NCBI GenBank assembly: GCA_001179505.1
Contig: CDMY01000266.1
Coordinates: 1 to 64,000 of the forward strand
DNA length: 64,000 nt
Source: Vitrella brassicaformis CCMP3155
Lineage: Eukaryota > Protista > Chromerida
Reading direction: 5' to 3'
Under the pieces are notes generated by a model. It saw only the letters and a list, made by a program, of their open reading frames with translations. It had not been told where the DNA came from and did not search any database. The stretch's first letter is position 1, and each line of letters starts with the position of its first letter. This document shows positions 23,597-58,376 of this stretch, piece by piece. A program made the translations under genes and the position numbers.

Positions 23597-24407
23597 TGTG
23601 AAGGGGGAGGGCCGCTGAGAGCACTGGTGTCGACGCACAGGACGAACCTGCGGAGATCCCTGCGCCAGGCGCACAAGCCACCGATGAAGGGAACGAATCT
23701 TTCAAAGCCTTGTGACAGAGATCTGGCCACTATAGATCATCCAGGCACAGTCCCGCAGAAGATCTGCCCTCGACCCAAAGCTCGCATTGCAGGTGCTCGA
23801 GAGTGCTTCCAGCGGCGCGTTAATGTTCTCGTCGGACGGCTGTTGGTGTGTGCTGACGATTCTCAACAGAACTCAGTGATTTGATGAGTCAATGCAGTGC
23901 TGTGTATGTGAGTTCGCAGCATTCGACACTCGAAGCATCAAGTTTCAGAGCATCCACTGAAACATCCATCGTCTTTGTCGTAGTCAGTCGCATCGATGCA
24001 CGATGAAACCCCATGCACGCCACGCACACAAGACGATTTACCAATAAGTCACGCACAGGTGTGTGTTGTGCTCTAGCTGCAGCTGTGTGGCGGCGTCGGT
24101 TCTGTCTGTCGACATCAAAACCGCCATCAGCCGCCATCCTCCGCCGGGCCATTGACAGAGACAAAATACACACACCCAGCAGCACATACCCATGAGCACC
24201 GTCAAAGACTAAACTCGACAAAAGGTTCATCTCATCGACCAACCCAGACACTTAGTTAGTAGTTGAGGCATGCCGTCTCTCTCCCTCTCTCTCTCTCTCT
24301 CTTCCATGCCATCCATCCATCCGACAATCACATGCAGCACAAGCAAGCAGCTATGCACACAAGCTTGACAAACAAAACCGAGCCAGCAATACGCTGACTG
24401 GGCGTAT

Positions 24408-25545
24408 TCAGAACCACCCCCTGCGGCCGCTGAAGCGTGATCCCCAGCCGGTGCGACCGATGTGCCGGCTGCTGGGACGGCTGAAGATGCCGCCACTGAA
24501 CCGGGACCGACTCCTGCTGCCCACACGGACTGCCAGCACACACCAACCAAACCACCGGCCAAGAGAAAGACAGTCGCGCGTTAGGACAGTGCATGTGTTG
24601 GTGTCGGTGGCTGCTGCTTACATCCTCCCCCGCCCATCACGAGGCCCAGGCGGCGCCTGCTTTCGTCGTCATCGGCATCTCCGGCCTCCTCATATTCGAA
24701 TTCGCCACTGTCGATGACTGCGCCCTTCTCGTCGACCAACGAAAACTCGCCTGAGTGAACGGATGCCAGAGAGGAAGTGCGTGTCGGTCTGAGTGTATCT
24801 GTGGCTGGTGTGTGTTCGCTCACCAGGCTTTGTGATGAGTGTGTGTCCGAGTGAGAGGTGGAGCTCAGTCGTGTTGGTCGTCAGATCACGGAAGACGCCC
24901 TCAATGTTGTAGACACGCTCAGGGGCCCTGTCACCCAGCTGACAGCAAAAGGGAGAGGGACACGGAGAAAAAGGGATACCCATCCGCCACTCAGTGTGGT
25001 GTGTGCCTTCCATGCCCACGTTGATGTGGAGGGACTCCATCTTTTGGATCTCGTCGAGCGGGAGGAAGGCGAGGCCCTCCAAAGGCACACTGTCGAGTGC
25101 CTCGCTGAACCTCAAAGGCATGCTGTCCTTGCGGCTGACCAGCTGCTCGTCGTCGGACACCGTGATCTCCTTCGACACTGACAGACACACACGGCACACA
25201 CACACACAGATGGACGCCACATCCCTCCCACTTGCTGTCTGTGGCTGCGTACGCTGGATGGCGGCCAGCATGAGGCCGAACACACACGCGGCGGTCAGGA
25301 CGATGGCGCCCACGACGGCCAGCACTTTGAGTGCGGTGATGCGCTTGGGCTTCTCGGTGGCCAACGACACCTGGGGGGCCTCCAAATCACAAACCTGCAC
25401 ACACCAGCAGCACACAGACAGACAGACAGATAGGCAGACACACAGGAGGTAGGGATGGTGGCGGTGGGCATCAGGTTGGGTGAGAGAGCCATGTGTCAGT
25501 GGTCACCTTGCTGCCGATGGGCTGCTGGGCGGCGGAGTGGGCCAT
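24408..25545 (-). CDS. Type II membrane/secretory precursor with acidic spacer, RRRL site and cationic Gly/Arg tail (paralog 1)
   Basis: Six exons join in frame (~240 aa): MAHSAAQQPIGSK/VCDLEAP...KPKRITALKVLAVVGAIVLTAACVFGLMLAAIQ.../...EIQKMESLHIN/LGDRAPERVYNIEGVFRD.../GEFSLVDEKGAVIDSGEFEYEEAGDADDDESRRRLGLVMGGGG/FRVGSRSRSRFSGGIFSRPSSRHIGRTGWGSRFSGRRGWF*. Confidence 0.8.
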
Positions 25546-25757
25546 GGCGACAAACAAACGAGATGGCTGACGAGGGGAGGGACCGACAGCGACTTCGGGC
25601 AGAAGAGTGCTTGGCTGGGATTGAAGGCAGAAGTTGGTTTGAACCACAAGGAATGGGATGACAGGAGGATGGCGGCGGCTTTGGCGAGGCGGAGGGGAGG
25701 CGTTTGGGAGGGGTAGATGGCGTTCAACCCTTCAGCCGTTGATCGACCGTTGCTGGC
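24720..25757. repeat. Segmental duplication, direct orientation (partner ~51995-53077)
   Basis: Exons, most introns and ~200 bp upstream of the ATG are nearly identical between the two loci. Confidence 0.95.
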
Positions 25758-29167: not shown

Positions 29168-29882
29168 TGTGTGCAGGACAGCACCGAGTACGGTTCGTTG
29201 ATCAAGATGATTCGCGTGTTAGGTTTGCCGCCTAAGGAGGAGTTGAAGAAGCTCAACATGGAGACGTACAACCGCATGGTAACTCCCTACTCACCTGCAC
29301 ACACACACACACAGCCATCCATCCATCCATCTCTATCTCTCTCTCTCTGTGTGTGTTGCGTTGGATGTGTGTGCATTAGTGTCACACGTTGCCGCACGTG
29401 GCCCAGAAGCCCCGCGATGAGGTGAAGACCGCCCTGCGTGAGGTCATCGACGACGTGCGGGTGCCAATGCCCGACGACGAACAGTTCAGCCTACTCTTCG
29501 AGTCCGTGAGCCCCCCCCCCCGCCCCTCCCCCACANNNNNNNNNNNNNNNNNNNNNNNNNNNNNNNNNNNNNNNNNNNNNNNNNNNNNNNNNNNNNNNNN
29601 NNNNNNNNNNNNNNNNNNNNNNNNNNNNNNNNNNNNNNNNNNNNNNNNNNNNNNNNNNNNNNNNNNNNNNNNNNNNNNNNNNNNNNNNNNNNNNNNNNNN
29701 NNNNNNNNNNNNNNNNNNNNNNNNNNNNNNNNNNNNNNNNNNNNNNNNNNNNNNNNNNNNNNNNNNNNNNNNNNNNNNNNNNNNNNNNNNNNNNNNNNNN
29801 NNNNNNNNNNNNNNNNNNNNNNNNNNNNNNNNNNNCCCCCGCCCCTCCCCCACACACACGCACCACGCATCACTGTCCCTGT

Positions 29883-51559: not shown

Positions 51560-52846
51560 TCACCACCAGCCCCTGCGGCCCCAGCCACGGCGGTATCCCC
51601 CGTGGCCCCAGCCGCCGAAGCGCCGGTATCCCCCGTGGTAGCCCCTGCCGTAGAAGCGCCGGCCGTAGTAGCCCCGGCGGCCGAAACGAGAGCGGCCGAA
51701 ATAAGAGCGGCCGAACATACCGCGGGAGCGTCCGAGCTTCAGACCACCAACTGACGAGCACGCAGACACACACAGAGAGGCCAAGATGAGCCACAGGCGA
51801 TGCTGCTTGGTGGTCTAGCTGATGACTGTCTGTGTACTCACATATGCCGAAGAGGCCCAGTCGGCGTCTGCTGGCCTGCTCGTCGGTGGCGGCCTCATCG
51901 TCATCGTCATCGGCTGTGTCGGCCTCCTCTTTGCTGAGCTTCTCGACTTCCTCGTCGGTGAGGAACTCGTATTCGTAGTCGCCGCTGTGGATGACCGCAC
52001 CCTTCTCGTCGACCAACGAGAACTCGCCTGAGTGAATGGATGGCCACAGACATACAGAGGCACGGAGAGTGCGTGTCGGCCTGCGCCTGTATGTGTGTGG
52101 TTCGTGGATTGCTCACCAGGTTTGGCGATGAGTATGTGTCCGAGTGAGAGGTGGACCTCAGTCGTGTTGGTCGTCAGATCACGGAAGACGCCCTCAATGT
52201 TGTAGACACGCTCAGAGGCCCTGTCACCCAGCTGACAGCAAAAGGGAGAGGGACACAGAGAAAAAGGGATGCCCATCCGCCACTCAGTGTGTGCCTTCCC
52301 CCGTGGCTCGCTTACGTTGATGTGGAGGGACTCCATCTTTTGGATCTCGTCGAGCGGGAGGAAGGCGAGGCCCTCCAAAGGCACACTGTCGAGTGCCTCG
52401 CTGAACCTCAGAGGCATGCTGTCCTTGCGGCTGACGAGCTGCTCGTCGTCGGACACCGTGATCTCCTTCGACACTGACGGACACACACACACACACACAC
52501 AGATGGACACCACACCCCTCCCACTTGCTGTCTGTGGCTGCGTACGCTGGATGGCGGCCAGCATGAGGCCGAACACACACGCGGCGGTCAGGACGATGGC
52601 GCCCACGACGGCCAGCACCTTGAGTGCGATGGTGCGCTTGGGCTTCTTGGTGGCCAACGACACCTGGGGGGCCTCCAAATCACAAACCTGCACACACCAG
52701 CAGCACACAGACAGACAGACAGACAGACAGGCAGACACACAAGAAGTAGGGATGGTGGCGGTGGGCATCAGGTTGGGTGAGAGAGCCATGTGTGTGTCAG
52801 TGGTCACCTTGCTGCCGATGGGCTGCTGGGCGACGGAGTGGGCCAT
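51560..52846 (-). CDS. Type II membrane/secretory precursor with acidic spacer, RRRL site and cationic Gly/Arg/Tyr tail (paralog 2)
   Basis: Same six-exon structure as 24408-25545; ends …SGDYEYEFLTDEEVEKLSKEEADTADDDDDEAATDEQASRRRLGLFGI/FGGLKLGRSRGMFGRSYFGRSRFGRRGYYGRRFYGRGYHGGYRRFGGWGHGGYRRGWGRRGWW*. Confidence 0.82.
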
Positions 52847-58076: not shown

Positions 58077-58376
58077 NNNNNNNNNNNNNNNNNNNNNNNN
58101 NNNNNNNNNNNNNNNNNNNNNNNNNNNNNNNNNNNNNNNNNNNNNNNNNNNNNNNNNNNNNNNNNNNNNNNNNNNNNNNNNNNNNNNNNNNNNNNNNNNN
58201 NNNNNNNNNNNNNNNNNNNNNNNNNNNNNNNNNNNNNNNNNNNNNNNNNNNNNNNNNNNNNNNNNNNNNNNNNNNNNNNNNNNNNNNNNNNNNNNNNNNN
58301 NNNNNNNNNNNNNNNNNNNNNNNNNNNNNNNNNNNNNNNNNNNNNNNNNNNNNNNNNNNNNNNNNNNNNNNNNNNN
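58077..58376. other. Assembly gap (300 N)
   Basis: Run of N flanked by short C-rich sequence. Confidence 0.99.

Follow-up and report, generated by a model that had tools for sequence, protein, structure and literature searches.

The aspartyl protease plasmepsin V accepts the motif R-x-L. The Golgi protease ASP5, as characterised by Coffey et al., depends on Arg at both P3 and P2 and on Leu at P1, cuts after this Leu, is indifferent to the residues at P1′ and P2′, and also works near the C-terminus of a substrate, as in MYR1 (PMC4764566). In diatoms, R-x-L is the pro-peptide cleavage site of wall proteins, namely the silaffins, silacidins, cingulins and SAPs (PMC5647440), and Tyr-rich wall precursors of Eimeria undergo proteolytic maturation before they are cross-linked (cited in PMC3261165). 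Here we analyse a gene of Vitrella brassicaformis CCMP3155 whose product, P0001, carries R-x-L between an acidic spacer and a cationic C-terminal tail. The gene lies on the minus strand of a stretch of 64,000 nucleotides (positions 1 to 64,000 of contig CDMY01000266.1, C266; hereafter the window), which belongs to an assembly of 72.7 Mb in 1064 contigs. Vitrella is a free-living, photosynthetic chromerid related to the Apicomplexa, the group that includes the malaria parasites. An earlier reading of the DNA alone, referred to below as the original prediction, had taken the gene for an antimicrobial-peptide precursor cleaved at a multibasic kexin/furin site.

To place P0001 among other proteins, we searched 1.84 billion representative proteins with a profile made from the Vitrella domain and then ran one word search seeded with the Siedleckia protein; throughout, homology searches were run with unspliced reading frames of the window or with database protein identifiers, not with joined models. 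In the profile search, a set of proteins in the same length class aligned in one single stretch; by their source names they come from Piridium sociabile, from the blastogregarine Siedleckia nematoides and the gregarine Polyplicarium translucidae, and from metagenome or transcriptome assemblies. The word search reached the orthologues of Toxoplasma gondii (TGME49_282020, P0056), Neospora (P0055) and Hammondia (P0063), together with further transcriptome proteins. These three orthologues are uncharacterised “transmembrane proteins” with the site RRLEQ or RRLEP and a conserved Cys/Tyr-rich tail module. About 20 relatives were found in total, and they share a common layout: an anchor or signal peptide, a small β-rich domain, an acidic linker, R-x-L and a low-complexity tail. 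A profile-profile comparison (hhalign) of the Vitrella core with the apicomplexan group gave a probability of 99.2% and an E-value of 1e-19 over 138 columns. Pfam returned no match for 17 family members, among them the Toxoplasma protein and the relative P0051, nor for the raw window frames, which agrees with the original prediction in that no described family was recognised. Judged by these sequence comparisons, the family is previously undescribed and spans chrompodellids and Apicomplexa, and the idea of a peptide precursor particular to this protist has to be given up, since the family reaches TGME49_282020. A further word-based search with the full 15-row alignment was dominated by low-complexity words and yielded no member beyond those already known. 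The profile search also gave many multi-stretch matches to bacterial WG-repeat proteins, which are members of WG_beta_rep (PF14903). Kinship with this family was rejected, as these proteins match only profile positions 81-126 and no member scores against Pfam; the last β-hairpin of P0001 (residues 141-175) is similar to one repeat unit, and we judge this a single-hairpin resemblance, not homology.

The most constant feature of the family is the boundary between spacer and tail, where R-x-L is present in all 21 proteins inspected: as RRL in 16, as RQL in two, and as RNL, RYL and RTL in one each. In a 15-sequence alignment, whose members descend to 22% identity to P0001, only five columns are invariant, namely three Leu residues of the β-core, R184 and L186, and the invariance of the Arg and the Leu was repeated in a 19-row alignment and in an apicomplexan alignment of nine rows. 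Most proteins have a single R-x-L behind the domain, with extra copies in P0005 and P0048. The site takes the sole Arg among the 86 post-domain residues of P0007 and the sole Leu among the 136 of P0016. Shuffling of the post-domain regions gave a joint chance of ~3e-8 that each of the ten lineage representatives has an R-x-L at least once. The hhalign comparison sets the Vitrella RRRL on the RRL of TGME49_282020, which reads RRLEQ and conforms to the TEXEL rule (RRLxx) as well as to the PEXEL rule (RxLxE/Q/D). Because the linker that holds the motif varies in length and is poorly modelled (AlphaFold pLDDT < 50), a structural role of R-x-L is unlikely.

The Vitrella genome contains about ten pepsin-family loci. 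One of them, on contig C688 (G000:C688:132600-133750; L033:1300-2463:-), matches a nepenthesin-type N-lobe model over its full length. Its best solved relatives are PM5 of P. vivax (PDB code 4ZL4, E = 4e-39) and plasmepsin V (PDB code 8TYF), with the next match at 3e-7, and its reading frame contains the catalytic motifs DTGS and DSG as well as a Cys-rich nepenthesin-like insert. By these features the C688 gene is a plasmepsin V/ASP5-type (clade-D) aspartyl protease, and its product is a candidate enzyme for the P0001 family. Two other loci were considered and set aside: L014 (G000:C266:97566-98795, ~33 kb past the end of the window) is pepsin/cathepsin D-like or plasmepsin X-like and L022 is an ordinary pepsin/cathepsin D-like or plasmepsin X-like gene, neither being plasmepsin V-like. 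Neither Woo et al. 2015 nor the Babesia aspartyl-protease paper contains a statement on a clade-D enzyme in chromerids.

P0001 has all the parts that had been read from the DNA: a signal anchor, a conserved domain of ~110 residues, a spacer with ten acidic residues, RRRL, and a tail of 48 residues with ten Arg and no acidic residue. It is predicted to be a type II membrane protein with a cytosolic N-terminus and with domain, site and tail in the lumen, because the basic KPKR precedes the anchor and acidic residues come after it. The anchor is retained in most family members. In P0051 a predicted cleavable signal peptide takes its place, which would likewise put domain and tail in the lumen. 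AlphaFold predicts a helix at residues 35-64, over the anchor, and an antiparallel β-sheet at ~109-168 (pLDDT 77-85), followed by disorder after residue 170; the full-length model is poor (pLDDT 53), and a domain-only model from 19 rows is moderate (pLDDT 67), with values of 80-85 in its β-core. No fold could be assigned. Foldseek returned no match in the PDB at E ≤ 0.001, ESM Atlas gave TM-scores of 0.43 at most, and the best Z-score of a wide VIA-align search (6.5) is within background; an ESM Atlas feature search with P0001 and P0056 gave no usable match. Directly behind the domain, at residues 165-175 (24680-24712), lies a Tyr/Phe-acidic motif (E-Y-E-Y-E, E-Y-D-F-E or E-Y-D-Y-E) that occurs at the same place in the paralogs and appears to resemble the tyrosine-sulfation consensus.

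From this material we infer a topology, a cleavage, a role for the spacer and a function for the tail. The N-terminus of P0001 would be cytosolic, and the β-rich domain, acidic spacer, R-x-L and tail would face the lumen of the secretory pathway. The plasmepsin V/ASP5-type protease encoded by Vitrella would cut R-R-L after Leu186 and free the Gly/Arg/aromatic tail (P0001:187-234) for secretion, while anchor, domain and spacer would remain in the membrane. Before the cut, the charge-matched spacer may hold the sticky polycationic tail neutral and soluble, with the domain as carrier. The released tail would most likely be a self-associating component of an extracellular matrix, a wall or an adhesive, held together by Arg-aromatic and Tyr contacts, and not a classical membrane-lytic peptide. 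Comparative evidence supports the idea of a precursor well. We consider cleavage at R-x-L, taken as a step of its own, somewhat probable, and we propose the complete chain, with P0001 as a type II membrane-anchored pro-protein, only tentatively.

P0001 might instead stay uncleaved, as a single-pass resident whose tethered, disordered tail serves in surface adhesion, wall anchoring or the like, with R-x-L as a sorting or binding motif. The R-x-L element of Plasmodium carries sorting information too. The conserved anchor would suit a permanent tether, and cleavage of family members is itself a prediction from sequence. We regard this account as unlikely, however: in P0051 a cleavable signal peptide stands in place of the anchor, which makes the tether dispensable, and just two strict residues in an otherwise free linker are a pattern whose only well-documented readers in this lineage are plasmepsin V and ASP5. 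Moreover, a spacer that neutralises charge is typical of a pro-piece destined for removal.

Such a spacer is best seen among the Vitrella paralogs. A six-frame genome search found the second copy in the window and further copies on contigs C243, C238, C13, C376 and C562. P0001 to P0005 are the database models of the five core paralogs and P0008 is a sixth, more distant one; the seventh member, on C562 (L010, around nt 2022), is divergent and has an acidic stretch, RRRL, MPSF and a Gly/Arg-containing continuation. The Vitrella family thus comprises at least seven genes, and RRR(L) is kept in all seven inspected. One exon of the C243 gene holds the spacer, RRRL and the entire tail, so the order of domain, site and tail is independent of splice prediction. 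The original prediction had proposed that the spacer neutralises the tail, and in the five core paralogs the two are indeed charge-matched, with net charges of -10/+10, -16/+17, -8/+8, -5/+4 and -10/+7 (spacer/tail). With a slightly different definition of the spacer, the correlation over these five genes is r = -0.99; as the genes are kin, this amounts to ~3 independent charge contrasts, 3/3 in the same direction. In the recent pair P0001/P0002, spacer charge and tail charge have shifted together. Because all five core paralogs retain RRRL and mirror the charges of spacer and tail, the arrangement of spacer, site and tail is more than chance.

The two copies in the window, here called paralogs 1 and 2, were compared at the DNA level. 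Identity is 90-100% over a stretch that begins ~150 bp before the ATG and covers exons 1-5 together with introns 1-3. It drops to background a few codons after RRRL, and the tails are unrelated at the DNA level. The pair is thus a mosaic: a “carrier” that was homogenised or recently duplicated is followed by tails that have nothing in common. The pattern points to gene conversion in the carrier part or to an exchanged tail exon. P0002, a JGI transcript model, has the N-terminal residues of paralog 1, whereas paralog 2 of the window differs at residue 5; in addition, paralog 2 (52700-52846) reads TI at residues 32-33 where P0002 reads IT. The 5′ halves of the two genes, being nearly identical, were probably merged during transcript assembly, in agreement with a loose end that runs X6 and X3 show at 25651.

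With its Arg and aromatic residues as “stickers” and Gly and Ser as spacers, the composition of the P0001 tail fits a self-associating matrix, wall or adhesive peptide. The tail is 27% Gly, lacks Tyr and consists to 48% of Gly, Ser and Pro, with no marked amphipathic helix (maximal helical moment 0.46). The core Vitrella tails are rich in Gly, Arg and aromatic residues, with the exception of P0004, which is Gly/Tyr-rich with two Arg only. The tails of P0003 and P0004 contain 22-23% Tyr (13-14 in ~60 residues), and those of relatives contain 7-15 Tyr each. Across the family the tails are mostly near-neutral and rich in Tyr, Gly, Pro, Ala and Val, the strongly cationic, Arg-rich versions being peculiar to Vitrella. 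In the apicomplexan proteins the tail carries a module (C-x-Y-G-C ... P-Y-Y-Y-R-P-F-F-G ... G-Y-G-G) of ~40 residues, 24 of which are invariant. As this module is better conserved than the domain, the tail is presumably the functional product and the N-terminal part its carrier. The C-termini of P0001-P0004, P0016, P0041, P0007, P0015 and P0023 are nearly all aromatic (W, F or Y), often as GW[WF] or Y-Y; four of the five core Vitrella tails end in Trp or Phe, and this C-terminal aromatic residue is conserved even though the tails cannot be aligned.

The same R-x-L processing could also release an antimicrobial defence peptide, with the spacer as a neutralising pro-piece as in defensin precursors. 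Glycine-rich cationic antimicrobial peptides exist, and the tail of P0001, with a net charge of +10, no acidic residue and a wealth of Gly, Arg and aromatic residues, could be one of them. The covariation of spacer and tail charge across the paralogs would be expected here too, the near-identical gene pair with unrelated tails could reflect diversifying evolution, and a hydrophobic segment (of the type GLVMG or GLFGI) stands just after the site. Against this, the tail of P0004 has few Arg residues, the tails of Piridium, gregarine and coccidian relatives are near-neutral and rich in Tyr, Pro and Gly, and one group of relatives has the conserved, Cys-containing module, so that the product is not generally a cationic killer peptide; nor does the P0001 tail form a marked amphipathic helix. 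Since the tails outside Vitrella are near-neutral and rich in Tyr, Gly and Pro, the antimicrobial reading is weakened, and we think a defence peptide still less likely than an uncleaved protein. A wall, matrix or adhesive product seems to fit better than a classical antimicrobial peptide. Of the secreted Gly/Arg-rich defence or adhesive peptide originally envisaged, the expressed gene of secretory-precursor type and the Arg-rich tail have stood, whereas the antimicrobial label has lost ground.

Several observations nevertheless weigh against a plasmepsin V-type release of a matrix or wall peptide. The Plasmodium-type E/Q/D at P2′ is absent from the Vitrella proteins, in which the Leu is followed by GL, GF, IV, DP, WA or MP, and occurs only in Toxoplasma; in P0001, ~125 residues separate the anchor from the site, which is not the spacing of a classical PEXEL. 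Spacer and tail charge correlate only weakly, and not significantly, in the members outside the Vitrella core (r = -0.47). The tail of P0001, being free of Tyr and strongly cationic, fits a defence peptide as well as it fits a matrix peptide. A link of the Toxoplasma orthologue to the oocyst, the sole functional hint and a weak one, depends on the older identifier 082020, which we take to be TGME49_282020 after renumbering in ToxoDB, and the signal is small. On the array, the probe reads 4.66, 6.06 and 5.47 in oocysts at days 0, 4 and 10, 3.88 in tachyzoites and 4.09 in bradyzoites, with a significant ratio of 2.0 between day-10 oocysts and tachyzoites (PMC3278417 Table S2). In the literature we found no mention of TGME49_282020 in a main text and met it only in this one oocyst microarray table (PMC3278417). 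It was not found in the available parts of the supplements to the ASP5 N-terminome, the ASP5 eLife study and the tachyzoite hyperLOPIT data, and the available supplementary text of one oocyst proteome and one cat-stage study likewise did not list it; as these texts are incomplete, the negative is an absence of evidence and no more.

A kexin/furin-type convertase, as originally proposed, would cut behind RRR and free an antimicrobial peptide starting at Leu186. Dibasic processing of precursors is widespread among eukaryotes, and RRR is found in Piridium as well as in each of the seven inspected Vitrella genes. These are, however, the only places where an Arg precedes R-x-L, so that the first Arg is not conserved family-wide; RQL, RNL, RYL and RTL lack a basic pair, and the Leu, superfluous for a convertase, is invariant. 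The conserved element is R-x-L and not a multibasic site. A six-frame genome search gave no match to the proprotein-convertase P-domain (PF01483), a weak negative, as short exons could hide the domain and S8 subtilisins were not surveyed. We favour a plasmepsin V-like cut after Leu186 over a furin/kexin cut because R-x-L is invariant, such a protease gene is present and a P-domain match was not obtained, and consider the convertase quite improbable. Both the assignment to a kexin/furin protease and the label of an antimicrobial peptide are probably mistaken or, at the least, unproven. The reverse topology, in which the tail would be cytosolic and serve as an RG/RS-type nucleic-acid-binding or condensate-forming segment of a membrane protein, is highly improbable: SRSRSR and the RG/RGG-like runs do resemble cytosolic or nuclear low-complexity domains, but the positive-inside rule (KPKR before the anchor, acidic residues after it), the relative in which an N-terminal signal peptide directs the entire chain into the lumen and the conserved Cys pairs in the tails of several relatives all speak against it.

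The gene model was examined exon by exon (Table 1). The database protein P0001 (234 residues, “unnamed protein product”) is the translation of the six exons, as computed with a local script, and all five introns have GT..AG borders. All five junctions occur without mismatch in spliced transcript contigs of the public runs X1, X2 and X6, which stem from two studies; four of them are listed as joints, and that of intron 25178-25252 is visible only from contig pieces (a skipped repeat). Run X3, of DNA, is unspliced and colinear with the genome at this locus. Intron 24530-24621 and the introns upstream of it, for which RNA-seq confirmation had been called for, are confirmed by these contigs, and the last exon and the frame are as originally deduced, the exon translation being equal to P0001 and the transcript contigs agreeing with it. 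A second copy of the tail exon was not found in the whole genome, so the contig that holds the last three exons, with the tail exon inside it, belongs to paralog 1. No alternative last exon was seen among the transcript contigs, which rare isoforms could escape. What the analysis establishes directly is that the gene model holds and is transcribed, that the family exists and keeps the motif invariant, and that the genome has the protease gene. (GT)n, (GTCT)n and (CT)n microsatellites occur in the introns and the 3′ flank (25181-25211, 25406-25445, 24280-24300), and the window contains two assembly gaps of 300 bases (N runs 29536-29835 and 58077-58376).

Table 1. Features of the P0001 gene and its product, and the second family member in the window.
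Feature	Position in window	Strand	Residues of P0001	Remarks
Whole coding span	24408-25545	minus	1-234	6 exons, 234 codons + stop (24408-24410); product P0001
Exon 1, coding part	25507-25545	minus	1-13	transcript reaches at least 25620 on the 5′ side
Intron	25395-25506	minus		GT..AG
Exon 2	25253-25394	minus	14-61	last part of the predicted cytosolic N-terminus, KPKR, membrane anchor
Intron	25178-25252	minus		GT..AG
Exon 3	25020-25177	minus	61-113	conserved, predicted luminal domain, first half
Intron	24939-25019	minus		GT..AG
Exon 4	24824-24938	minus	114-152	β-strand core of the domain
NTT sequon (predicted)	24867-24875	minus		in exon 4
Intron	24751-24823	minus		GT..AG
Exon 5	24622-24750	minus	152-195	last β-hairpin, acidic spacer, RRRL, tail residues 1-9
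Intron	24530-24621	minus		GT..AG
Exon 6	24408-24529	minus	195-234	with stop; Gly/Arg/Ser/aromatic tail; 3′UTR to ~24312
Polar N-terminus			1-32	ends in KPKR
Hydrophobic anchor	25257-25337	minus	33-59	
Conserved domain			61-168	
Acidic spacer	24659-24712	minus	165-182	18 residues, 10 acidic
RRRL	24647-24658	minus	183-186	R184 and L186 form the family-invariant R-x-L; proposed cut after Leu
Tail			187-234	48 residues: 13 Gly, 10 Arg, 9 Ser, 5 Phe, 2 Trp, no Asp/Glu
Paralog 2	51560-52846	minus		same family; DNA compared with paralog 1

The family is a conserved candidate substrate in a free-living alga and in parasites, and it bears on the role that plasmepsin V and ASP5 had before effector export. 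It is possible, although doubtful, that it represents an ancestral, pre-parasitic substrate class of these proteases. R-x-L cleavage would then have arisen in free-living myzozoans, perhaps even SAR-wide given the diatom RXL, as a means of freeing sticky peptides for wall, adhesion or defence from carriers that neutralise their charge, and would later have been recruited for effector export in Plasmodium and Toxoplasma, with TGME49_282020 (RRLEQ) as a retained member. As Toxoplasma is tractable, the question can be tested with existing knockouts and inhibitors. The modular design of a constant carrier with a swappable tail, in which spacer charge tracks tail charge, is relevant to the handling of aggregation-prone polycationic secreted peptides, and if the tails were antimicrobial or adhesive they would form a new peptide class from a coral-associated alga.

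Compared with described systems, P0001 shares with the precursors of α-defensins and dermaseptins an acidic segment that balances a cationic C-terminal peptide, a conserved site between the two and a variable mature part. Unlike them, it has a signal anchor and a domain of ~110 residues in place of a short pre-pro region, and R-x-L in place of a dibasic site; it has no sequence similarity to antimicrobial-peptide families, and its relatives have neutral, Tyr-rich tails. In composition only, the Gly/Tyr-rich secreted segments of P0003 and P0004 are similar to those of Eimeria GAM56 and GAM82, the Tyr-rich oocyst proteins of Toxoplasma and the glycine-rich wall proteins of plants. The oocyst-biased array signal of the Toxoplasma orthologue is a further likeness to coccidian wall precursors, whereas the P0001 tail, unlike GAM56 and GAM82, is without Tyr. 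The diatom RXL precursors also pass through the secretory pathway and have an R-x-L boundary and low-complexity peptides rich in charged or aromatic residues, and the membrane-anchored SAP1/3 have a C-terminal RXL (PMC5647440). They differ in that there is no homology and that their products are Lys/Ser-rich and associated with silica. Vitrella is not, to our knowledge, known to silicify.

The TEXEL/PEXEL substrates of ASP5 and plasmepsin V differ in that Vitrella is free-living and has no host cell as a destination for export, that the precursor is membrane-anchored in type II orientation, that the Vitrella sites lack E/Q/D at P2′, and that the product, released by a cleavage that is predicted here, would be a short low-complexity tail and not a folded effector. 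In common with these substrates (GRA16, and MYR1 with its C-terminal-proximal RRLSE), P0001 appears to be a secretory protein with R-R-L or R-x-L in a disordered stretch. As in MYR1, the motif is far from the N-terminus; a protease of the matching type is encoded in the genome, and the Toxoplasma member of the family reads RRLEQ.

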